A stretch of 64,000 nucleotides of DNA, taken from the IMG/VR virus record IMGVR_UViG_3300042558_004148, positions 248,001-312,000 of that record; one strand, 5' to 3'. The notes beneath the pieces are model-generated. The model made no database searches. It worked only from the letters and a program-made list of their open reading frames with translations, and was not told where the DNA came from. Below, piece after piece: positions 3,294 through 54,318 of the stretch (positions are counted from its first letter, which is position 1; every line of letters begins with the position of its first letter). The translations under genes were made by a program, and so were the position numbers.

Positions 3294-4013
3294 ATGAACT
3301 TTGATATAAATAATTTCAACAAACTAGGTTATGTAATAGTAAAAGATTTTTTATCTGAAGATGAACTAAAAACTTTATTAGAAACATCACAAAAGCATTA
3401 TGAGTATTCTCTTAACTTAAGGGAACATGAAGGCAACTACAGACTAAACAGTCCAACTAATTTAAACAAAATAGAGGGTGCCTGCGATTACGAACCTGAG
3501 TTTTTGAAGATAGCAAAAAATAAAATTTTAGTAGATACTGCCAAGAAATTAATTAATACCGAGGAAACATTGGATGTTTATATATCTAAATTTTTCCCTA
3601 TGAAACCTAAAGTGGGAATATCAACATTTTTCCACCAAGACAATTTCTATTTTGGAGGCGATCCCAATACCATAATTAGTTGTGCTCTATATTTTCAAGA
3701 TACGAATAAAGAAAATGGTTGCTTAAGAATCATTCCGGGGTCCCATAATATAGGAATAATAAGACATGATATATCTTCTCATATAGGAGGTATAAGGTGG
3801 ATAGATGAAAAAATACTAAATCCTAATGCGATATTAGATTTAGAACTGGATGCTCCATATGCTGTGTTTTTTAATATTAATATGATACATGGGTGTTATC
3901 CAAACACATCAAACGGGACTCGATTTAGCTTAGCATGGGAATACATAGAATCTAGTAATAGTAAAGTAGCACACTCACCAGATAATTGGTGTGATAGAAA
4001 CTTAGTAGGATAA
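3294..4013 (+). CDS. phytanoyl-CoA dioxygenase (PhyH)-family 2OG-Fe(II) oxygenase
   Basis: HQD facial-triad motif, NGCLRIIPGSH, HG...N.S...R. Confidence 0.85.
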   Translation: MNFDINNFNKLGYVIVKDFLSEDELKTLLETSQKHYEYSLNLREHEGNYRLNSPTNLNKIEGACDYEPEFLKIAKNKILVDTAKKLINTEETLDVYISKFFPMKPKVGISTFFHQDNFYFGGDPNTIISCALYFQDTNKENGCLRIIPGSHNIGIIRHDISSHIGGIRWIDEKILNPNAILDLELDAPYAVFFNINMIHGCYPNTSNGTRFSLAWEYIESSNSKVAHSPDNWCDRNLVG

Positions 4014-8177: not shown

Positions 8178-8600
8178 GTATAAAAGATAGGATTAAGGCA
8201 TTTTTTGATGCAGCCGGAGCATTTTTTCGATGGATGTGGATGTATCCAACAACTCCAATTGAGAATTTTCAGGATGCAAGGTTTCGCTACAGTTCTCAAT
8301 TGGATCCGGAGATTATAAAAGCATTTGATGACATACAAAAATCAATAGAAGAGCATCAGCGTGGTAATAAAAAAATTAATTCATGAGAAGTTTTAATAAT
8401 CTCTTTGATGTAATCGATATGAAAGCATCTATTAAACAACCAGATACTTACCACCGTATAGAAGAGGAAATAGCATCATTACACAGGCTCCTAGATAAAT
8501 TAGCACCTAATACAATGGGTGAGGGTGATCTTATAGGTAATAGGATAGAGAAATTATTATCATCAGATGCAGATTGGGATAAAATAAAATAGCAAATTAT

Positions 8601-8640
8601 TTTTTTATCTCGTATAAATTGATTAAATTTGTATAACAAT
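8601..8640 (+). promoter_or_regulatory. promoter driving the ncRNA cluster
   Basis: TTTTTTTTATCTCG...TAAATTTG, same family as the other promoters, a few nt upstream of the tRNA-CUA. Confidence 0.6.
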
Positions 8641-8646
8641 TAAAAA

Positions 8647-8726
8647 GGTCCTGGAGCTTAATCTGACGTGGAAGTCAGGTCTGCCTCTAAAACAGATAGC
8701 ATCGGGTTCGAATCCTGCTAGGATCA
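8647..8726 (+). tRNA. non-canonical amber-suppressor tRNA (anticodon CUA)
   Basis: acceptor GGTCCTG(G)/(C)TAGGATC-A; anticodon arm TCTGC-CTCTAAA-ACAGA with CTA at 8687-8689; T-loop TTCGAAT; atypical D region. Confidence 0.75.
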
Positions 8727-8741: not shown

Positions 8742-8972
8742 AAATAGTAAGATAGCAGATAGACCTATATCAGCAGAATCCCACAGGGAGTCAGAAATGA
8801 CGAGCAAGACGGAGCTCCTATCAGATTAACGCGTTGAGGAGGCACTCAAAGTTTTCCGAGAGGTTAACAGGTGTATAAACGATGGTTTGGGTAGAACGGA
8901 TGTTAAAGGCGAGATATAGGTAGAAAGGATGGGGTAACCCACGAATGTGTAAATCTTAAGGTCTTACTATTT
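8742..8972 (+). ncRNA. ~230 nt structured RNA candidate
   Basis: 11 bp closing helix 8742-8752/8962-8972 and 9 bp helix 8763-8771/8913-8921; no ORF. Confidence 0.55.
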
Positions 8973-9012
8973 TAATTATTCTTGATTGATAATTAACACT
9001 TAAAAAATATTT

Positions 9013-23364: not shown

Positions 23365-26300
23365 ATGAAGAAAAATCTATACCTATTACCAACTGATAAA
23401 CCAAGCAGATTAATAATCTATTCAACATTGTTAAATGAATTTAGATTATTAGCTGAGCCCATCGAAGATTGGAAACATAAAAGAAACGTCTATGTCACTT
23501 CTGATGAAGAACCAAAAGCTGGAGATTATGTATTAGATGATGAGCAAGATGTATTTCAAGTTTTAGAGATAAACCATACGCAAGGAATATTAAGAAGTGA
23601 TGGATTTACTCATGTAATAGCTATTTGTAAAAAAATAATACTAACAACAGATGACGAACTTATTAAGGATGGTGTACAAGCTATTGATGACGAGTTCTTA
23701 GAATGGTTTGTTAGGAATCCAAGTTGTGAGAAAGTTGAGGTCAATTCAATACCAAGATGCTGCGGAAGATGTAATGGAATAGACGATTTATGTTTTACTG
23801 ATATGACGTGCGATGATCATAAGGAAAGAGGCTGTGAAATTTGTTATGGAAAGATGGTTGAATATTTCATAATCATTCCAAAAGAAGAACCCAACCGGGA
23901 AATAACTTTTGAAAAAGTCTTTGGTGAAGAAAAAAAGAAAGATCTTAAAGAGTTTATTGACAAACATAAAAAAGAAACACTCGACGAAGCTGTTGAAAGA
24001 TTATTTAATTACCATTCAAATAATACATCATTGGCTGAAGGTCATTATGATTATATGATGGACAAGGAGGATTTTAAACAAGCATCATATGAATTGGTTA
24101 AATGGCAACATGAGCAAGATAAGAATAAGTTTAGCGCGGAGGAGGTCAGAAGAATAGCGGAATGGTCATTTCACTTCTATAAGACTAACGAATTTGATGA
24201 TGATGAGCTAGAAGCAGAATGGAGCAGAATACTAGATAATAATTTAAAAAAGAAATAAAACCATGAAAAATTTAGCAAACGTTGAGGTATTTCACATAGA
24301 AATCACAGAAAAAGGAGATTTTGCACACATTTCATTTCAAGATTTAGACAATTGGAGGGATATTAATAATGGATTTAACCACATTCGCGTTCCTATGAAT
24401 TTAAGACCAATTCAAAAATCTGTTAGAGATAATGTATTAGTCGACCAATCGGTTAAATTAGAATCGGAAGTTCTAAATAAACAATTTTAAAGAAATAAGA
24501 TCATGGAACAATCAGCAGTAGAATGGTTAGAGCTTCAATTAAATTCAAAGTCCATTATTACGAAAAGCTTATTTAAGCAAGCCAAAGAAATGGGGAATCA
24601 ACAACAAGACAAATTTGCTATTGACTTCTTTAACTGGTGTAACTCTGAAGATGCAGAAGATCTATTACACGATTTAATAATGGTTGGGGAAGTAGACAAA
24701 AATGTAACAATAGAACAAATATTAGAAATTTATAAAAACAAATAGGATATGGAACCAAAGCAAACACCTTTAGAAGAACTTAGACAATCCGATTTAAAAC
24801 ACTATGATGAATTATCAACAGAATGCCATCATTGGTCAAGTGGTGTACCAAGAGCAATAAATTTTTATTACGATTATAAAAAAATGAATTTAATTCAAAG
24901 AATTAAATTAGCATTTAAAAACAAATAAGATCATGGAACAATCAGCAGTAGAATGGTTAGTAGAACAATTTGAAAAAATAGTATTTTACAGTGAAGAAGC
25001 TAAAGAAAATACTATTAAACAAGCCAAAGAAATGCAAGAAAAACAATTATTAGAAATGCTTCACAAGTTTGGATTTGATTACACATACAATTACAGAGGA
25101 GAAAAAACTATTTATGAGTGGATCCCTGAATGGTTTGAAGAACAAAAAAGATTAGAACAATTAAAAAATAAATAAGATATGAAAGCATTTTACCTGAAAA
25201 GCTCAGTAACAAAAGACTTAACTCGTTCTTTTGAAGACATTATTAAAGATAGTGAAAATAATCCAGAATCATTTATCCCGGAAACTATGGAGATGAAGAT
25301 GGGATTGGAATCTATTGATATCCCTGAACATTTAGTTGAAAAATTCAAAGAACATTTCCACGATACTAAATCTCCTATAATGGAGGAAGAGATAATGGGG
25401 TTTTTAGAAAAAAACAAATAGGATCATGAAGGTAACGGAAACAGCACAAAGCAAAAGAAAACACCACACAGTAGAGGTAGATGGTATTCCTTATTTTAGA
25501 AATGAATATTTTGAGTTTAATTTCGAAAAGAATAAATGGGTGAGAGAAAAACTAGGCTGGAGTATCGGAGATGAGAAAGGCGAAGGACCTTATGTAGAAC
25601 CTAAAGGTGCTCTCGACAGTCTAAGTAAGTACACCTCTCAGGAATTGGAAGAAATGTTTAAAAAACTAAATAAGTAAAATTGTGATAGCGGTAACAGTAA
25701 CAGTGATTGTAGCCTTTGCAATTAGTTTTAAAGATAGATTTCTAGATTATTTGAATAACAGAAAATAATTAAACAGGGAAGCTGAAAACTGTATAGAGTA
25801 AGCAACATACATAAATTTATACATAAATGTACACATTAAGAACAATTGAAACAGATGGAAGAGAAGTAAATCTGTATTTAGGAAGTCATTACACGATCCA
25901 TAAAAAAGGAAGTGTAAGCGGAGAAGAATTCAAGCATAAAATTGACCAATTCTTTGGTGAGTCTTGTAGTGAAAACGAACATCCAGAACAAGTGAAATCT
26001 TTTATTGATGCAGAGAATTTACCAAACTCCCTACCTTTATATTGGGATAAAAACCACTACATCGTAAATGAATCAGGTAAAACATTTCAAAAACTTTAAA
26101 AAAAGAATCAAGATGACATCAGAAAGAATCAAAGAGATACAAGACCAAACGGCTTATCCGGAGAGTAGAAGTGTTATGCTAGCATTAAAGCAGGTATGGA
26201 ATGAGTGCGAACAGGATAAGTCCAAATACACGCTAGACGATCTAAAAGAAGCCTATTCGATGGGTAGAACGGGTAAGAGCATTAGGGATTTTAATCAAAC

Positions 26301-29299: not shown

Positions 29300-30300
29300 T
29301 ATATCACGGTTGTCATTGGGCCTTTTCGGGGTAGATCTCCCAGAGGGCCCGGCCTCCAAATAGATTATACCAATAACAATACTAATACTAACAACCATGC
29401 CAATACCAATACTCATAGTACTACTAGAGAGAGTCCTAGAGAGAGTCATAGAGAGAGAAGAAGTACTAGATAGACTAGAGAGAAGAACCAATAACATATT
29501 CCGTATCACAGTAGACAAGTACATGAGCATAGACAAGTACATAGACATAGACACAAGCTTAGACATCATGTCCAACCTCATCCTATACTAGATAGAAACG
29601 ACCAGTAGCATAGACACGTACATACACATAGTAACAGACCCAAACCAAGACTTATACTAGAGAGGCATAGAGTGGTTCATAGAGAGAGAAGACAGAGAGA
29701 GAAAGGTCAACCAAACCCCTAGCCAATAGGCTTCATTAGAGAAGACCTTATAGATCCAACCGGATAGGCCCATTAACATAGTATGGTAGTAAGATACTAT
29801 GTGGGATAGTCCCCTGTCATTCGCGTTAAAAGGGCCCGTTTGCAAGCCCCTCTCCAGGGCTGAGCTACCACCCAGGGTGTATATACACGGATTTCTCGGA
29901 TGCCTCGTTTTCCCATCCACATACCCACGGTTTCCATGTGTCCAAGCCAATCTGGAAAAATGTGGTATATTGTGGTAAAAAGTGTGATTTTGGGCCGAGT
30001 TCACCCTGCCCCGGTTGGATCCCAAAAGACCCGCCTCGAAAACCGCCCCGTATGGTCCATTGAGCGGCCTTATTTCCTTGCCCCGCCTCAGCTTGGTCAG
30101 GATACCAAGGATTCCCAGATCCACCCGCCTATCTCTATGTGATTCCGTATGTGATTCCAGTCTTCATTCTCTCTCTATACACCTCGGACTATCTCTCTCT
30201 AGTATCCTCTTTAGTTCTCTCTCTTCTCTCTATAGTACTAGGAGACGGAACAGTATTAGATTTATTTATTTGGGGCCGGATTTTTCTGAGGGTTGGGGTT
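29300..30300. repeat. non-coding, quasi-symmetric low-complexity island (AG-rich arm / GC-rich core / TC-rich arm)
   Basis: TAGAGAGAG repeats on the left, CTCTCTCTA on the right, CCCGCCT repeats in the core. Confidence 0.7.
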
Positions 30301-44237: not shown

Positions 44238-45765
44238 ATGAATCATATGTTAGTAATACTTAAGAGATCAGTGTTTTCAAGGTTTAGTGGATCACTACCC
44301 AAAGGAGCAGTAACAATATACAACGAAGATACCGGATCTATTATGATAAATCCAAAATCAACCAATCCAGTTTGGTTAAGTGTTGATGCAAAGAAAACGT
44401 TCACCCCAATGGAATGGGATAAAGTAAAATAACATGGTACACATTGTTAAATTTGATGATCTTGTATTTGTCCCGCACCATCTTCCTGATTCGATCAAAA
44501 CCGAGGTGGGATTTGCAGACGGCAGTAGCGTATCAATAGTTGCTGGTCCTATGTTATATGGCGACGGTGTTAACACCTTTGAGGTGTTTTTCTCAGATGA
44601 AGATAATCCCAGATGTTGGCAGACCAGAGAAGAGATTGAAGAAGAATTCACAAAGAGAGGCATTCCGTTCATTAACATGATTTAATTTTTTTATCCGATA
44701 CCAATTTATTATCTTTGCTAAACACCAAAAATATAAACAATGTACACATTAAAGACACAGTACGAAACATATGATGTTCGTTTGAAGTTCGGAAGATACA
44801 ATAACAGAAGAACCGCTATCGAACTAATTGATCTTGAGGATGGATGCCCAGTCATGATGGCGACGGTGAATCTACCAGACGTATCGCTTTCAGATGATGA
44901 AGTTATCATAAAGAACTATTCAGAGAATGAGGGCGTATTAGAATTTCTAATCGAAAATGGAATAGTAAGTGAACCAGTAAGAACTGTATCTTCAGGTTGG
45001 GTTACTTGTCCGGTTGTTAAATTACTTAAACAGGATTAATCATGGATCTGGATAAGTTAATAGATACAGCAGATGAAAACAGGAAAGAATTAGTTTGGAG
45101 AAAAGTGGTAGGATCTGATTGGGAAAAAGAAAGGGAAAAAGTAATGGGATACATTTCTGGATTATCAAATAGGGATGAACTAAAAAATGAGTTAAAAAAG
45201 CTATCTGATAAATTTAGAGATCTAAATAGAGATTTAACAAAAAGTATGGAAGCCCAGAAATTGGTTGACCTTGGGTACTTCAGAACTCTTGATGAAGCTT
45301 TACTAAGAAGAAATATCGAAGATGGTATAATAAACAAGCTTCATGAAGCAACTCCAAAACAGTTGGATGCTATCACGGACAAGTCAAAGGGATTCTTCGT
45401 ATACTACAGAGATTTCTACAATGATGTTGAATTTTTTAAAATATCTGAAAATGATAATTAATACCAGGGAAGAAGAAATTAGAATGACCCAGATCTATAT
45501 CGAGATGATCCGAACCTCCGGCAATAAAATTGAATTCGTATACGATTCTAATGTTGACCATGAGGTAAAAGAGAGACCAAAGTTTCGAATGCTTAACGGA
45601 CAAAGTTATGTTATACATCATAATGGACATACCACGGAGAGATATAACGAATTCACTATGACTGGTAAATTCGATGGTGGATTCACGTCAATCAATTTTG
45701 GTATAGATAGAATGATTTGCATGGCACCTTTCATAATTGATACTGTATTCGAAAAAATCCAGTAA
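44238..45765 (+). other. five hypothetical early genes (44238, 44434, 44740, 45042, ~45451)
   Basis: promoters at 44196 and 44687. Confidence 0.55.
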
Positions 45766-45828
45766 TTATTTTTTTATCTGAATCCAAATTTCTATATTTG
45801 CTCTATCAACAAACTAAAACAAAAAGAT

Positions 45829-46263
45829 ATGGGATTTTTTAGCTGGAAAACGTGCGATAATGGTGAATCAATTGCTAATGTGTACTCAGGGAAACCAACA
45901 TACACTGTACACATGATCACACCTGATGGTAGAGTATTTACTGAGAACGAGTATGATGGTTACGGTGAATTTGGAGGAAAGGACTTTTATGAATTACTTG
46001 CTGAACTAAATGGTCTTGGTTCAGACCGAAGTGCAGGAATCGATCTTTGCTTCAAAAATAATCCAAATGGTGATAATACACCGGGAGTGATTTATCCTAA
46101 GTTGGTAGAGGATTTGGAATCAGATGTGGTAGCTCAGTACAATAACTTACCCAATCCAGAAACATGTGAAGCTCAGGGTTACTTCTACGGTGATGAAGAG
46201 GAAGATGAAGATGAGTGGGAAGATGAGGACGAGGATGAGGATGAAGAAGATGAAGAAGAATAG
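45829..46263 (+). CDS. hypothetical early protein with acidic tail
   Basis: YDGYGEFGGKDFYELLA; ends at TAG followed by terminator. Confidence 0.7.
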   Translation: MGFFSWKTCDNGESIANVYSGKPTYTVHMITPDGRVFTENEYDGYGEFGGKDFYELLAELNGLGSDRSAGIDLCFKNNPNGDNTPGVIYPKLVEDLESDVVAQYNNLPNPETCEAQGYFYGDEEEDEDEWEDEDEDEDEEDEEE

Positions 46264-46716
46264 TTTGTTTGTTTGGTTATAAGAAATGGGCCTCGTGATG
46301 AGGTCCATTTCTGTTTGTAGCGGTTGCTAAGAATTCCTACCTGGCAGGGAGGAAACACCGTGGGTTAAAAATTATTTGATATTATTTTTTTATCTGGAAC
46401 CGATTACTTATATTTGCTCTGTAACTAAAACAAATAGCATTATGGAGATTAAAAAATTATTCTGTGTGGCTTTCACCGGTCAGGAAGATTGGGACAGTCC
46501 AACAATCTTACACGTTAGAACAACTGATAGAGATTCAGCATTAAAGATAGCTTTAAATAAAATTGGATTCACTGAAGAGGCAGCTGACTCAATGGCGGAA
46601 GAAGGACTCAATGACTATTTGGTAATTGAAGTTGACGATATAATTGAAGAATAATTTTTTTATCTGGAAATAATATATTACTTTTACTTCATAATCAAAC
46701 TAAAAACAAAAAAGAT

Positions 46717-47133
46717 ATGGCAACACGTTCAAGAATTGGAATCGAAAAAGAAGATGGTACAATACTTTCAGTATACTGTCACTGGGATGGTTACCCATCA
46801 CACAATGGAAAAATATTATTAGAGAACTACACTGACCGAGAGAAAGTTTTAGCTCTAATTGAATTGGGAGCAATCTCAATTCTGGCTAAGAACTTAACAC
46901 CGATTGATGGTGATGCTCACGATTTTGAGAAACCCGCTAAGGATGTGGTTGTGGCTTACCACAGAGACCGAGGTGAAGGACTTCAAATCCCAAGAGTTAA
47001 TGCTTCATTGGAAGCTTTCTCAAGATCTGACTTTGAACAATATGGTTACATATTCACAAAAGACAATCAATGGAAAATAACATTTGGAAGTTCCAGAATT
47101 GCAGACCTAACTCCGGAAATGTGTAAGGAGTAA
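46717..47133 (+). CDS. conserved phage early protein
   Basis: MATRSRIG...SVYCHWDGYP. Confidence 0.7.
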   Translation: MATRSRIGIEKEDGTILSVYCHWDGYPSHNGKILLENYTDREKVLALIELGAISILAKNLTPIDGDAHDFEKPAKDVVVAYHRDRGEGLQIPRVNASLEAFSRSDFEQYGYIFTKDNQWKITFGSSRIADLTPEMCKE

Positions 47134-47953
47134 TAAAGAATTTGTTTGGTTGGTTGGAAGAAGGGTTCGGATTTTGTCCGGCCCTTTTTCTTTTTTGTTT
47201 AATGTATTTGCAAATTGGTTAAACAAATGGTAAACACCCCGGAACATAGTATGGTAGTAACATACCATGCACGCACGCACATTTCCGCGGAAATATTTTT
47301 TTATCCTGAATCTTTTTATTATATTTGCTAATCAAAACCAAAGCCATGAACGAACTAGTAGAAAGAACAAAAGAACATTTTGATAACAACTATCCTCACA
47401 TTCACCTAAGACAATTGGATGATAGAGAGATTGCATCCATATTATCAACCTCTCATATGCAATTCAATATGGACGGATCACCGTTACCATTTGATAAAAA
47501 AATGTATCTGTTGTATGATTACCTTTTATCCCAATCCCTAGTAGATGTCGACGAATAATAATAACGACGGTGTTATCCGTAGACGATCAGTGTTCAGTAA
47601 GAAAGATTATTATTTCATCTTTGGACAGATGCATAAGACTGTCGACGGTGTTTCCATGAAAGACAGATGGGTTAGAGTAAGAGCAAGAAATGAACGTGAT
47701 GCAAAGATAGTATTCGAGAATGAATTCACATCTAAGTACATGCCCTCGGTGAATTCCTATAGCCGATCAGTACCCAAGAAAATAATGTATGGCAGAAAAA
47801 TTTCTAATTCATGGCTCGACCCGCTAGAAGACCCGCTATCAGTTTTTCCTGATGGAGAGTATATGTTTTTTGATCAAAAATATATTCCGTAATATTTTTT
47901 TATCTGAACCGGATTACTTATATTTGCTATGTAACCAATTAAAACAAACAAAC

Positions 47954-48202
47954 ATGCCAGTATTAAAAAACATTTCACACGAAACATTAAGAAACAGATT
48001 AAGAGAAGGAGCAGTTACCTTTTCATTTAGAAAAACTGATGGTTCGCTCAGAAGAGCATTAGGAACTTTGGATTCTTCAAGAATTCCAGAATCAGGAAAA
48101 CCAAAAGGAGGAACACCACCTCCAGGAGTAACAACATTCTTCGATTTGGAAAAATCAGCTTGGCGTTCGGTTTCATATAGACAGGAAATCTGGGTTGATT
48201 AA
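47954..48202 (+). CDS. WYL_2/SH3 beta-barrel-fold protein
   Basis: VTFSFRKTDGSLRRALGTL...FFDLEKSAWRS. Confidence 0.7.
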   Translation: MPVLKNISHETLRNRLREGAVTFSFRKTDGSLRRALGTLDSSRIPESGKPKGGTPPPGVTTFFDLEKSAWRSVSYRQEIWVD

Positions 48203-48409
48203 CCCACCACTTTCATAGTTTAGATTTAGGCGAAAAAGGTCTGGAAATTCCAGACCTTTTTTGTGTGTGGTGTTTTCTGGTGTAGCAGTAGGGAAACACC
48301 GTCGCCAACGGTGGATGTCCAGATGTGAGTAGCGAAAATTAATTCGGATACTATTTTTTTATTACCCAGAAATTTCTTATATTTGCTATGTAACTAAAAC
48401 ATTATACCT

Positions 48410-50182
48410 ATGAACAAACATGAAGTAATTGGAAAAACAAGAACCTATCTAACAACGGTGGGAATTGAGGAAGGATTGGATTACATAATAAGTCTTCAAG
48501 GACCAACGATAATCCCAACTGAATCCGGATCTGATAAATTCACGGATCCTATCAAAGATGAGGTCGGTAAGTTGAGAGCAAAGTTTTTATAAAGATTCAA
48601 ATTCATTTTAACTTAGAAAGGTCTGGTAATTCCAGACCTTTCTTGTGTGTGGTGTTTTCTGGTGTAGCAGGAGGGAATCACCGTCGCCGGAGGTGTTTCT
48701 CTCCTGCCCAACCAGCTGGTCTGGAAATAAAAAATTATTTGGAAACTTTAACGTTTGGCATCGTTGCTATCTAAAAGAGAATCGTTATATTTGCTTAACA
48801 ACCAATTAAAAGAATCGTTATGAGCAGAGACCAATTTTTAGCAATGAGAAGAGAATTCATAAATTTAATTGAAGCACTAAGAAAGGAACATCAAGCATTT
48901 CAGGTTATCCAATCTAAGAACATCGAAGTACGAATTTGTTTAAACTAACCAATACACCATACACATGACAACAACAACTGAAGCAGCAAAAACAAAGGAT
49001 GAGTTATTAGAGCAACTCAATCACATAATGGAAAGATTTGATTTCGAAAAGGTTCATGCCTATATGAAGTTAACCAATTGGAAATGGATCGATGAGGTTC
49101 CCTCGGTGAATAAGCTGAGAACAACAGCAGAAAGACTTCTATATGATGTTATAGCTTCTGATGACCCAACCACAACTTCAGGTACTGGAGGATTCACAGC
49201 ATCCAAATTCACTTGGGGAATACAATTGGCATTCTCAATAGAGGTTAGAAAAAGTTTTTAAAAATATCTGGTTTAATTTTTTTACCAGAGCAGGAATAGT
49301 TATCTTTACATCATAATCAATAATCAATAATCAATTAAAACAAAAAAGACATGAGCAGATTAAGAGACCCAAAAACAGGAAGATTTCTTCCTAAGAATGC
49401 AGGACCACAAGCTTCAGCATCAGCATTGACTTTAGGTCAAAAGATTCACAGAGTACTTACATCAGGTATGAAGGTGTTTGGAAAGAAAGACATCTCAGGT
49501 AATCCAACCTCCATGCCTCAAGGATCCTCGGTGATTTTGGAGAAGACAGCAGAAATTGGACCAACAGGTACACACGTTGTCAGAGTTAAAAAAGAAAATT
49601 CTACCAGAACTTTCTACACAACAGAAGAAGAAGTTTAGAAATAAAAACATCTATGATAAAGGAGACTTTGTAATGAAGTCTCCTTTTTTTGTGGACTAAG
49701 CTAATGCAATTCTGGATGAGCTGTATCCGAACACCGCCGGCAACGGTGCGCCAGGTATAGGTTGATCGGATTTTATAGTTTACTATCAATAGTCAATAGT
49801 CAACTGTTTATTTTTTTATCTGGAACAGATTCGTTATATTTGCTTTATAACCAATTAAAACTAATGAGCATGAAAAAGAAAGAGAAAGCAATTGCACCAA
49901 ATTCATTCTGGGCAACCCAAATGGGACACAAGGACAACGGTGGATGGGACAACGATTCGTGGGCAACTCAAAGAGGATAGGATGAAAGTTAAAGTATTTT
50001 TCGAGGAGAATAGCGCCAAACTCCAGAATCTGGTGAATGAGTGGTTGGAAGAGAATTCAGGGTTTCAGATATTACAAATTCATCCAGTAGTTTCTAGAGC
50101 ACAGGGGGGTAGCGGACTTTATATGACCATTGTTTATAGTGAAGATCCTAATAACACATTCTCAAAATTAACCGATAGATAA
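48410..50182 (+). other. monocistronic small early genes (48410, 48965, 49351, ~49863, ~49982)
   Basis: most have their own promoter and terminator. Confidence 0.55.
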
Positions 50183-50666
50183 TTTTTTTATCTGAAACGG
50201 ATTACTTACATTTGCTTTATAACCAACTAAAACAAAGAAGAATGAACACTTTCAATTTTATTTTATATTACATTTTATGTGCAATGGTAGGTATTCTAAT
50301 AGGATTATCCATATACAGTAAAACTAGAAAATAAACACTAACCAACTAAAAACAATACATTATGTCTAAAACAGAAAAAATTATCACAACAACATTCCAA
50401 GTTTGGAGCATTGGATTAGGAGTTATCACTTTCGTTGCACTCGCAGTTACAATAGTAAACCTGATAACAGGTAACTATTGCGAAACAGCTTCCTTTGAGT
50501 TTTAACCTCACACACTCATTAAATTATTAAACCTGGACTAACCTCCAGGTTTTTTTGTGGGTTGCGGAGAAATTCATTTAAGCAGAGAGAGCTGCGGAGA
50601 AACACCGTCGTCAACGGTGTTTTCCGATCTTAGTCTAGGATATATAGAATAAAAATATAGACATAA

Positions 50667-50984
50667 ATGAAACATCTTAAAATTTTCGAAGGATACTCAC
50701 CAAAGAGTAGATTCCCTAGTATCGCAGTATTCCTTGCAATACCTGCTGATAATGATAGCATGAAGACATCTTACCTTAAAGAAAAAAGCGGTAAATCAGG
50801 CGATGTTAATAATTCAATGGTTAATGCTGATTATGTTGTAAGAGGTATAGGTTCCTTACTTTCAGAAATTGAAGAAGCTGGACTGGATGCTAGATATAGT
50901 GGTGCTATTAAAAAAGCAAAAGCTGCTTTAATTCCTGCGGTTATGAAGACAAAAGAATATCAATTACCTAAGGAAATAGAATAA
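50667..50984 (+). CDS. CTS-like N-terminus protein
   Basis: MKHLKIFEGY; GGATATATAGA upstream. Confidence 0.7.
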   Translation: MKHLKIFEGYSPKSRFPSIAVFLAIPADNDSMKTSYLKEKSGKSGDVNNSMVNADYVVRGIGSLLSEIEEAGLDARYSGAIKKAKAALIPAVMKTKEYQLPKEIE

Positions 50985-51485
50985 TTAAATACATCTCAAC
51001 TGAAGACTCCTATTGGAGTCTTTTTTTGTGGACTATTGCTTAACTGCTGCTCTACTGTCAAACACCGTTGCCGACGGTGTTTCCCATCTCCACATCCAAA
51101 ACTAGTATATCCTATACATAGTATGGTAGTAACATACCACGCTCGCGGGGGAAATAAATCTCATTTTATTTTTTTATCCGAACCTAATACATTACTTTTA
51201 CTTCATAATCAAACAAACACAAAATAAGCTATGAAAAAATTATCTAAATTTCACTTTGCATTATTAAGTCTATTGGTTCCTGTTGGTTTCGCAACTCTTG
51301 GGTTCGTTATCAATCCTTCTGGTTTGGGAACTAATTTAATTTGGGCTGCATATGTTTTAATTTTTATTGGGGGAGCGTCTGTTGGAATGTTGTTGCGTAA
51401 ATAAAAAAGAAAAAAAATTATTTGATTATTTTTTTATCTGAACCTAATACATTACTTTTACTCCATAATCAAACAACATACACCT

Positions 51486-51767
51486 ATGAAAAGAATTGGA
51501 TTTGGAATATTAGCGATAGCATTATTATTAAACTTGGCATCATGCGCCGATGTTGAGGTTGTAAAGGAATGTGTAAGTGATAACACATATGGTTTCTGGG
51601 GAGGACTTTGGCACGGCATCGTAGCACCTTTCAGTTTCTTCGGTTCATTAATCTGGGACGATATTAGTATGTACGCTGTTAACAACAACGGTGGCTGGTA
51701 TGATTTTGGATTCATACTTGGAGTTGGAGGTTTAACTTTCGGTTCAGGTAGAAAATCCAGTAAATAA
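51486..51767 (+). CDS. small lipoprotein/membrane protein
   Basis: LAS-C lipobox; GFWGGLWHG. Confidence 0.7.
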   Translation: MKRIGFGILAIALLLNLASCADVEVVKECVSDNTYGFWGGLWHGIVAPFSFFGSLIWDDISMYAVNNNGGWYDFGFILGVGGLTFGSGRKSSK

Positions 51768-51825
51768 TTTTTTTATCTGATTAGGATTCATTACTTTTAC
51801 TTCATACCAAATAACACTCAATATT

Positions 51826-53228
51826 ATGAACGTAGAAAAATGTGAAAGATGCAAAAAACCGACAAATGGAACAACCATCATGTCGATGTTTAATACTCAA
51901 GTTATCTGTATGCCTTGCAAAGATGAAGAAAAAGAAAACCCAAGGTATATGGAAGCTGTAGAAGCTGATAGAAAAGCTATCGCAAAAGGCGATTATAATT
52001 TTAGAGGAATTGGTTTGGTTTAGTTTGGTTGGTTAAAAAGATCCGGAATTATTTTTTTATCCGGATCTTTTATATTACTTTTACTTCATAATCAAACAAA
52101 AACAAAAACTATGGCTAAGGAATTATCAAAAAGAGAGAAAATAGAATTAAAGGTTAATCTTGCTGTTGCGAATTACTTTCGTGAGAATATGATTTCAACC
52201 AGAGTACCTTTTCATATCATACAGGATCAGGAAGCAGTTGGTCACATCATTAATATCGGAACAAGTATAATGATGAATAAGATTGGCATTGATACTTATC
52301 CGGGGAGTTTCGTAAAGGCAATACTCGATAATGATCTTCATGGAGCATTCTCAAGAGCAGACCACATCAATTCCCAGGTCCTAGGATTCTACATCACAAT
52401 GATGTATAATCTAGGTATCGATGTTACTAACGAAGAAATTGAAGAGTTAAAAGTATAGTTTGTTTAGTTTGGTTGGTTAAATGTGGAAGAGGCCTCGTGT
52501 ATGCGAGGTCTTTTTTTGTGGGCTGATGCTAAGCAACAGTTTCCAACAGCTCTCCAGCATCTCACCGTCGCCAACGGTGTTTCTCCATCTACTCTACGGT
52601 TGGAGGAATTCTTGGAATTGATATTAACGATGAGGTCCTGATCGGATAATCCAGGTACACCGTTGAATGGAATGATTGGGGTTTTATTTTTTTATCTGAA
52701 CCTAATGTTCTATATTTGCTCTGTAACCAAATAACAAACACTATGAAAAAAGATACTACTATCAAAGCTGGAGATTTATTAAAAGTAACAACATCAGATG
52801 GTGAAGTTGGAGTTGGATTTGCTTATCATTCAGTTGAGGGTATACCTGACTCTGACCTATTAATTGACATATCCTGGAGAACCGGAGGTTCGACCGAGTG
52901 TGTCGACTTAAATGAAGTTGAAATGGAATTTGAAAAAATTTCATTTTAATATTAAATAATTTTTTTATCTGAACTTAATGTTCTATATTTGCTCTGTAAC
53001 CAAATAACAACACTCACTATGAAAAATTTATTCCACGTATTAGGATTTTTAGCTTGCATGTTAATCGCAGTAGGAACTGCAACAGGACATGTTCAATCAG
53101 TTATCAGCTTCGAAGGTGCTGCTAATGAGATGACATTTTGTTTATTATCCTTCATGGGAGCAGCTGGATTTATGTTCAGCGCATTATCAAAAGATATAAA
53201 GGCTGAGAAGAGACATGGATTTGAGTAG
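51826..53228 (+). other. four monocistronic early genes (51826 Cys-rich, 52111, 52743, 53019)
   Basis: each with own promoter. Confidence 0.6.
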
Positions 53229-53428
53229 GTTCTGCTAACTATTTCAAATTCAGAAAGGAAAGAGGCTTTGGCCTCTTTTTTTGTGGACCAAGGTTAAGCA
53301 TCAGATTCCAACAGCTCTCCAGCAACTCACCGCCGGCAACGGTGTTTATGCATGCACATGAAGATTCATGATTATACATATGATTAAGCTATTTGATATA
53401 TACATCATAAAATAAACCATATCATATA

Positions 53429-53770
53429 ATGATTATAGCTAAATTAAATCCAGGTATTTCTATTATCAAACAAGAAAGTCCATTCGAAGCGCCGGTGTCC
53501 ATCACTTATGATTGGATGACAGTATTTATACCAAGATATATCCCAGGTGCTGCCAATTTCAATGTGAATCTATCTTATGGTGATGCAGTAATGAATGATG
53601 AACCAACACCAGCACCAAAAAAATTCAGAGGAGTTAAAGCCATATCGGTGGGTCTAACTGCTGGTGAAATTTCCAATTGGGGAACTAATGATGTTGTACT
53701 TCTAGAGATATTAGCAACAAAAATGAATCTTACCATAGAAAACACCTACGAAATAGATGATGACATATAA
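53429..53770 (+). CDS. hypothetical protein behind a GATATATAC motif
   Basis: ORF with late-type motif upstream. Confidence 0.6.
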   Translation: MIIAKLNPGISIIKQESPFEAPVSITYDWMTVFIPRYIPGAANFNVNLSYGDAVMNDEPTPAPKKFRGVKAISVGLTAGEISNWGTNDVVLLEILATKMNLTIENTYEIDDDI

Positions 53771-53791
53771 TAAAATTAAGTATCGCATATC

Positions 53792-54103
53792 ATGAAACAT
53801 CTCCAACTATATGAATCTTTCCATCACGAGAAAGAGTTGGTCTTCAAGTCAAGACAAGGTAGGGTAATCACCGTGAACTTATTAGGTGGTCGTATAGAAG
53901 ACATCGATAACCAAGCAGGAGTTAGATTCCCTTTCATGAAAGGACAGCAATACACAAGAACTATAGAGACATGGGCATGTAATAATGGATTCACTATCAA
54001 CGGTGAAGACACTTGTCCTGAGAAGAAAGTATTCGGGATACGTACATCAGACATTCCACAAGGACATGAGCTAAGAAGACTTTTTCCAAATAAGTTTAGG
54101 TAA
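53792..54103 (+). CDS. CTS-like N-terminus protein
   Basis: MKHLQLYESF. Confidence 0.7.
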   Translation: MKHLQLYESFHHEKELVFKSRQGRVITVNLLGGRIEDIDNQAGVRFPFMKGQQYTRTIETWACNNGFTINGEDTCPEKKVFGIRTSDIPQGHELRRLFPNKFR

Positions 54104-54318
54104 GCGATCATCTGATCGGTAAACTCCTCGGGTCGGTTGGATCCGAGGTTTTTTGTGCTTCTACATCTTCTGACATCTACTTACATCTTCTGACATCTAC
54201 TAAACATCTGCTCTACATCTTTTTCACCGTTGGCCAAATTTTATTAAAAAAGATTCTGTTTTATTTTTTTATCCGATGCATTATACTTATATTTGCTATG
54301 TAACTAAAAATAAAACAT

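Follow-up and report, generated by a model that had tools for sequence, protein, structure and literature searches.

The analyzed stretch of DNA (64,000 nucleotides, hereafter the window) is part of a phage genome of about 373 kb, and it is identical over the locus described here to four IMG/VR contigs of 126–373 kb from lake-water metagenomes. The host is most likely a member of Bacteroidota, as judged from TAnnTTTG promoter boxes, a Bacteroidota-style signal peptide, and a protein with a type-IX-secretion sorting domain in the flanking DNA. The region 8647–8726 (+) encodes an 80-nt tRNA-like RNA with the anticodon CUA (8687–8689), the discriminator A8726 (A73), and no encoded CCA; A8726 is followed by CAAAAG. 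The 5' strand GGUCCUGG (8647–8654) pairs with CUAGGAUC (8718–8725) to form an 8-bp acceptor stem, in which G8654–C8718 is the eighth pair. An extra loop of 8 nt, AGCUUAAU (8655–8662), precedes the D hairpin CUGAC-GUGGAA-GUCAG (8663–8678), whose loop carries the GG expected to contact the T loop. The anticodon arm (8679–8697) comprises the G8679·U8697 pair (26–44), a stem (8680–8684/8692–8696) that ends in a C8684·A8692 mismatch (31–39), and the loop CUCUAAA (8685–8691). It is followed by a short variable region, AGCAU (8698–8702), and a T arm (8703–8717) with a 4-bp stem, CGGG/CCUG (8703–8706/8714–8717), and the canonical loop UUCGAAU.

A phage promoter motif, TTTTTTTATC-N14-TAAATTTG (8600–8631, +), which contains a Bacteroidota-type −7 box (TAnnTTTG), ends 15 nt before the first base of the tRNA. 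It is a perfect match to a motif that occurs 37 times in the window against 0.5 expected (e.g. at 8600, 31328, 40226, and 44686–55901), almost always on the + strand ahead of genes and densely in the 44–57 kb region of small genes. Downstream, at a distance of 20 nt, lies a structured RNA of about 227 nt (8747–8973, +) that is not part of the tRNA but belongs to the same transcription unit and is probably cotranscribed with it. This RNA is present in four metatranscriptome runs, and the assembled contigs from three of them start exactly at 8747. The depth is 2–54 over this RNA and zero over the tRNA and the upstream gene, with only low depth (about 2, in one run) over part of the downstream gene. 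No promoter motif was found between the tRNA and this RNA. Transcription through the tRNA gene is therefore likely, but this is an inference. No RNA contig covers the tRNA, which may only reflect size selection or base modifications.

Homologues and predicted secondary structure

The gene escapes standard annotation. ARAGORN with default settings does not call it, and the tRNA model of Rfam (RF00005) finds it only with a permissive threshold, at 25.4 bits against a gathering threshold of 29 bits, whereas the canonical tRNAs of this phage score 47–74 bits. The Rfam alignment, as well as the drawing by ARAGORN at a lowered threshold (-ps90), places the tRNA in a different register that starts at 8654. 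Two models thus compete for the same 3' strand. In the canonical 7/5 cloverleaf, the acceptor is GAGCUUA/UAGGAUC with a G·A mismatch, the T stem contains a U·C mismatch, and the connector (2 nt), D stem (4 bp), D loop (8 nt), and variable loop (5 nt) all have canonical dimensions. In this case, GGUCCUG would be a 5' leader that happens to be complementary to the 3' strand and is removed by RNase P. In the alternative 8/4 model, the acceptor starts at 8647 as described above.

To discriminate between the two models, homologous sequences were collected. Related jumbo phages share the neighboring Fpg gene at 46–75% protein identity, but a search downstream of this gene in 17 related phage loci revealed neither a homologous tRNA nor a conserved gene order. 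Megablast and blastn searches of the region and the tRNA against GenBank phages gave no match, and the Fpg protein found only relatives at about 31% identity or less. Pattern scans of viral, metagenome, and genome collections yielded nine further distinct sequences from related phage contigs and metagenome contigs; scans with looser patterns added no members, and the bacterial and archaeal genome collection gave none. Eight of the nine carry CUA and fall into two subgroups, and one (in L161, a 5-kb metagenome contig; 3720–3798, −) carries GCA with the discriminator U73. The CUA members are all preceded by a TAnnTTTG box, or a close variant ending in TTTG, 15–19 nt upstream. ARAGORN missed the tRNA in all five homologous loci that were scanned.

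In the alignment of the 10 sequences, 94.8% of the cells in the 8/4 model are paired, and 17 of 25 pairs show changes on both sides. None of 500 shuffles reached the observed values on any measure, and slid controls gave 32–42% paired. The eight acceptor pairs form in all 10 sequences, and six of them show compensatory changes. The D stem is 100% paired, with two of its five pairs compensatory (GC, AU, and UG at one; AU, CG, and GU at the other), and all five pairs of the anticodon stem show double changes. The 31–39 position is C·A in seven sequences, G–C in two, and U–A in one, and the 26–44 pair is G·U in seven and A–U in three. The four T-stem pairs are 100% paired. In contrast, the acceptor of the canonical register is only 64% paired without compensatory change; pair 3–70 never forms, pair 2–71 forms only in the window copy, and pair 49–65 (U8702 with C8718) forms in none of the 10 sequences. 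RNAalifold run without guidance returned the 8/4 model plus the 26–44 pair. The 8/4 fold is 13–20 kcal/mol more stable than the canonical register in all 10 sequences, and it is the unconstrained minimum for L161 and for another homologue, L097. A covariance model of this fold scores the window copy at 93.5 bits and the family at 79–101 bits, whereas the best canonical tRNAs in about 1 Mb of sequence score 44.5 bits or less. An alternative D stem, GCUU/AAGU (8656–8659/8672–8675) with a 12-nt loop, was rejected on inspection of the alignment: it does not pair in L097-type sequences, while the 5-bp hairpin covaries.

The preliminary description, which had proposed a possible 8/4 fold with a long linker, a 5-bp hairpin 8–9 nt after the acceptor strand, a 31–39 mismatch, and no encoded CCA, held in its observations: every listed item is found in the sequence. 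It had also set covariation in support of a standard 7/5 cloverleaf as grounds for rejection, and the covariation favors the 8/4 fold instead. We regard this architecture with high confidence. The eighth acceptor pair, however, varies on one side only (G–C in eight sequences, G·U in two), and covariation cannot distinguish 8/4 from a 7-bp stem plus a 4-bp T stem with two unpaired bases. The 8/4 composition is thus favored by pairing in 10 of 10 sequences against 0 of 10 for the canonical alternative, but it is not proven by compensation.

The extra loop is strongly conserved, with the consensus A-R-Y-U-U-A-A-W, in which A9, U12, U13, A14, and A15 are invariant. We infer from the Rfam consensus that it reads like canonical positions 8–16 of a tRNA. 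Position 11 covaries with a base of the variable loop (11–55 is C–G in five sequences, U–A in three, and unpaired in two), and the switch occurs between otherwise nearly identical sequences. The neighboring pair 10–56 is G–C in eight and A–U in two, and pair 12–53 is weak. These facts suggest a 2–3 bp contact of 8656–8657 (possibly 8658) with 8699–8700 (8698), which remains tentative because it rests on about two substitution events and fails in one subgroup.

Relation to known tRNA classes

The GG in the D loop and the T arm GGUUCGAAUCC (T-loop consensus GGUUCRANUCC) are invariant in all 10 sequences, as in canonical tRNAs, but the two-nucleotide connector (U8, N9) is replaced by eight unpaired nucleotides, and the base at position 8 is a paired G. 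The fold matches the rare (8/4) tRNAs with an extra loop (E-loop), which were found in polycistrons of irregular tRNAs from forest and peat soil metatranscriptomes (Mukai et al. 2017, PMC5389517); a 2020 review (PMC7609411) places that loop between the acceptor and D stems. Both have a 12-bp acceptor branch of 8 + 4 pairs and this loop, both lie next to other irregular tRNA-like genes in one transcription unit, and a function in translation is unproven for both. The published example has the anticodon GCU and U73, comes from soil (probably Acidobacteria), was linked to toxin–antitoxin loci, and was not charged by Escherichia coli GlyRS and ThrRS. The gene described here has CUA and A73, lies in jumbo phages of freshwater Bacteroidota, and has its own phage promoter.

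The 8/4 branch is shared with allo-tRNAs and with the (8/4) tRNA-Ser and tRNA-His of bacteria and their phages (PMC5389517), which also occur in phage tRNA clusters and some of which carry nonsense or missense anticodons and work as suppressors in E. coli. Allo-tRNAs, however, have a long variable arm and a tRNA-Sec-like D arm (long stem, tetraloop) and rely on SerRS or AlaRS identity, whereas the variable region here is 5–6 nt and the D loop is 5–7 nt with GG, in addition to the 8-nt E-loop. The tRNA-Sec features, namely a 13-bp branch (8/5 or 9/4), a long variable arm, and the anticodon UCA, are absent.

The preliminary description noted the same loop sequence in tRNA-Pyl and inferred a possibly orthogonal class rather than a simple mutated Gln, Tyr, or Ser tRNA; this interpretation is partly supported. 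The noncanonical architecture holds, and the RNA is a distinct class and not a lightly mutated copy of one of the phage's own tRNAs, because none of 22 tRNAs and tRNA-like sequences from the neighboring array (including Gln, Lys, Tyr, and Trp) resembles it or is a convincing parent, and the Cys-anticodon tRNA of L161 has the same fold. Orthogonality stays a hypothesis. The link to tRNA-Pyl is not supported. The shared features are the anticodon, the 7-nt loop sequence, and an anticodon stem that can be read as six pairs if 26–44 is counted. tRNA-Pyl has 0–1 nt between the acceptor and D stems and a tiny D loop without G18G19, and in Methanosarcina barkeri its T loop lacks the usual TΨC sequence (PMC7609411). 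Its variable loop is 3 nt. None of these features is found here, as the connector is 8 nt, the variable loop is 5–6 nt, G18G19 and a standard T loop are present, and the discriminator is A73. No aminoacyl-tRNA synthetase family appears in the gene tables covering about 119 kb of the genome, although this was not a systematic search for PylRS and pylBCD. Moreover, the loop CUCUAAA is not specific to tRNA-Pyl: a scan of viral contigs for this loop plus a standard T loop gave at least 117 loci, of which ARAGORN called 93 as ordinary CUA tRNAs, labeled "Pyl" by default.

Canonical amber suppressor tRNAs of phages (tRNA-Sup-CUA of crAss-like, Lak, and other code-15 phages) share the anticodon CUA in a CUCUAAA loop, the GGUUCGAAUCC T arm, and A73, which is present in 41 of 69 distinct viral CUA tRNAs. 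Those are 71–78 nt 7/5 cloverleaves, with U8 in 64 of 69 cases, and are called by ARAGORN, whereas the present family is 80–82 nt. The phage's own tRNA-Gln(UUG) also has A73, so that this discriminator does not exclude Gln in this system.

TAG usage and proposed role

To search for recoded genes, 118.7 kb (32%) of the genome was assembled from flanking loci. In this portion, TAG behaves as an ordinary stop, and no in-frame TAG was found. TAG ends 18 of 143 ORFs of at least 100 aa (12.6%), and the median read-through extension is six codons, similar to TAA (seven) and TGA (three). Reading TAG as sense adds no more coding coverage than the TGA control (0.818 against 0.813). Among four TAGs with coding signal on both sides (24743, 26314, 52021, and 60176), the three that were inspected (24743, 52021, and 60176) are stops followed by a new start codon. 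Capsid-like (Gp23), peptidoglycan-binding, and Laminin-G-type genes are intact in the standard code. The loci of relatives show the same behavior.

Here, we propose that this is a genuine tRNA gene kept under selection, belonging to a rare structural class, an (8/4) tRNA with an extra loop. The analysis itself shows the 12-bp branch of 8 + 4 pairs, the conserved 8-nt loop in place of the usual connector, the 5-bp D hairpin with GG, the CUA anticodon in its CUCUAAA loop, and the standard T loop. The remainder of the model is inferred: the gene would be transcribed from the promoter at 8600–8631 together with the 227-nt RNA, cleaved by RNase P 5' of G8647, supplied with CCA by host enzymes, charged by a host or phage aminoacyl-tRNA synthetase (Gln, Lys, or Tyr are the usual candidates for a CUA tRNA with A73), and delivered by EF-Tu, because the branch is still 12 bp, to read UAG. 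We consider this functional, UAG-decoding interpretation probable but not secure. It is supported by the invariance of CUCUAAA in nine CUA members that differ at many stem positions, by the coherent CysRS identity set (GCA plus U73; PMC5389517) on the same fold in L161, where an array of 11 canonical tRNAs contains no other called Cys tRNA, by the promoter and the downstream RNA, and by the precedent that 8/4 tRNAs function in translation (PMC5389517, PMC7609411). It is weakened by the lack of in-frame TAG in the examined third of the genome, by the expectation that an efficient suppressor would extend about 12% of the phage's own proteins, and by the zero depth of the tRNA itself in four metatranscriptomes. 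The gene is the only E-loop tRNA found in 119 kb, beside at least 32 canonical tRNAs, and in this view its special shape most likely marks it for separate handling, such as selective charging, modification, timing, or escape from host enzymes that act on tRNAs.

An ordinary 7/5 cloverleaf starting at 8654 is very unlikely: although its dimensions are canonical and Rfam aligns it end to end, its score is below the threshold, its acceptor and T-stem pairs fail across the homologues, it is far less stable, and the supposed leader covaries perfectly with the 3' strand. It is possible, but doubtful, that the RNA has the 8/4 E-loop fold without being a decoder. It might be a processing handle or regulatory RNA, for example giving RNase P or RNase Z a cleavage site that releases the 227-nt RNA, or it might work like the uncharged irregular tRNA polycistrons linked to toxin–antitoxin systems. 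The absence of a TAG-containing gene in 119 kb, the other tRNA-like genes in the window that can hardly decode, the detection of only the downstream RNA in metatranscriptomes, and the published E-loop tRNA, which was not chargeable in vitro and whose polycistrons were proposed to be nontranslational (PMC5389517), agree with such a role. However, U33, CUA, and A37 in the 7-nt loop are invariant across both amber subgroups while the stems change by compensation, the branch length needed by EF-Tu is preserved, and the same fold carries a coherent Cys identity set. A processing handle would not need a conserved anticodon loop or GG in the D loop.

A role as the code-change tRNA of a TAG-recoded (code 15-like) phage, made from an early or middle promoter so that late structural or lysis genes with in-frame TAG can be translated, is unlikely on present evidence. 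This is the known role of phage CUA tRNAs, and the gene has its own promoter, but TAG is not depleted in the 32% of the genome examined as expected in recoded phages or their near relatives, and the capsid-like and other genes named above are intact in the standard code. Borges et al. (10.1101/2021.08.26.457843) detected suppressor tRNAs in only 40% of TAG-recoded phages, suspected undetected noncanonical suppressor tRNAs as the reason, and reported suppressor tRNAs in standard-code relatives of recoded phages; the present gene, as a putative suppressor, is a concrete example. A more speculative possibility, which we regard as unlikely, is that the E-loop 8/4 fold is a dedicated scaffold for special decoding in Bacteroidota jumbo phages. 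In that case, the extra loop, possibly pairing with the variable loop, would act as an identity or anti-identity element that lets one tRNA be charged, modified, or timed separately from the phage's canonical tRNAs and those of the host. It would be a natural orthogonal amber-decoding tRNA invisible to standard annotation, could account for part of the missing suppressor tRNAs of recoded phages, and would offer a new chassis for genetic-code expansion. Bacterial and phage tRNAs are almost always 7/5 cloverleaves, and annotation tools assume that shape; the (8/4) E-loop architecture was already known, and the new elements are its covariation-supported combination with a stop-codon anticodon, a second habitat for this poorly understood class, and a set of natural sequence variants. 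It raises testable questions on what the extra loop does for RNase P, synthetases, EF-Tu, and the ribosome, and naturally occurring odd-fold suppressors are of practical interest as orthogonal tRNA scaffolds.

Other RNA elements in the phage genome

The 227-nt RNA, abundant in freshwater and estuary metatranscriptomes, has a closing stem (8747–8753/8961–8967) and a folding z-score of −2.6. Two runs show a back-joint from 8973/8974 to 8747 with 7–10 extra letters, indicating either a circular RNA or tandem copies in relatives. It has no Rfam match and no paralogue in the loci examined.

The window also contains a family of tRNA-like genes (10465–10643, 11150–11279, 11425–11511, 11633–11698, and 55655–55752, +) that share the acceptor AGUCAGG/CCUGACU-A and a standard T arm. 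Their anticodon regions are expanded or aberrant (25 to about 115 extra nt), and one lacks a D stem. Three pass the Rfam tRNA threshold, but ARAGORN calls none. Relatives have such a gene directly after the amber tRNA (loci L143, L163, and L166). Two further odd tRNA-like elements (55214–55421 and 55477–55550, +) lie behind a phage promoter: one of about 208 nt with the acceptor CGGCUAG/CUAGCUG, a T arm, and a long insert, and a 74-nt "tRNA-Ile(AAU)" with a malformed anticodon arm. The array of at least 32 canonical tRNAs covers nearly all amino acids and lies just beyond the end of the window (loci L176, 9128–21400, and L179, 5129–15986); it includes a 115-nt tRNA with a nested T-arm-like insert (L176, 20892–21006). 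The phage also encodes a Thg1-family protein (3'-5' nucleotide addition at tRNA 5' ends) and a YqeY/GatB-like protein (L178, 6379–7236; L176, 18792–19250), both of which could act on tRNAs.

A match to the DUF805b RNA motif just under the Rfam threshold (35.0 against 35.6 bits) was found at 25772–25804 (+). A dense cluster of TAG triplets, which may be a repeat array, lies at 29361–29751 (+) within an unusually G+C-rich stretch (42–49% against 36% overall). A recurring intergenic motif around GTTTAGTTTGGTTGG, which translates as V*FGWL, follows stop codons at 51959–52470 and 46261–46320 and is probably a terminator or regulatory site. In a related phage (locus L023, 7940–8056), a 117-nt match to the Rfam tmRNA model (54.9 bits) spans the ends of the model only.
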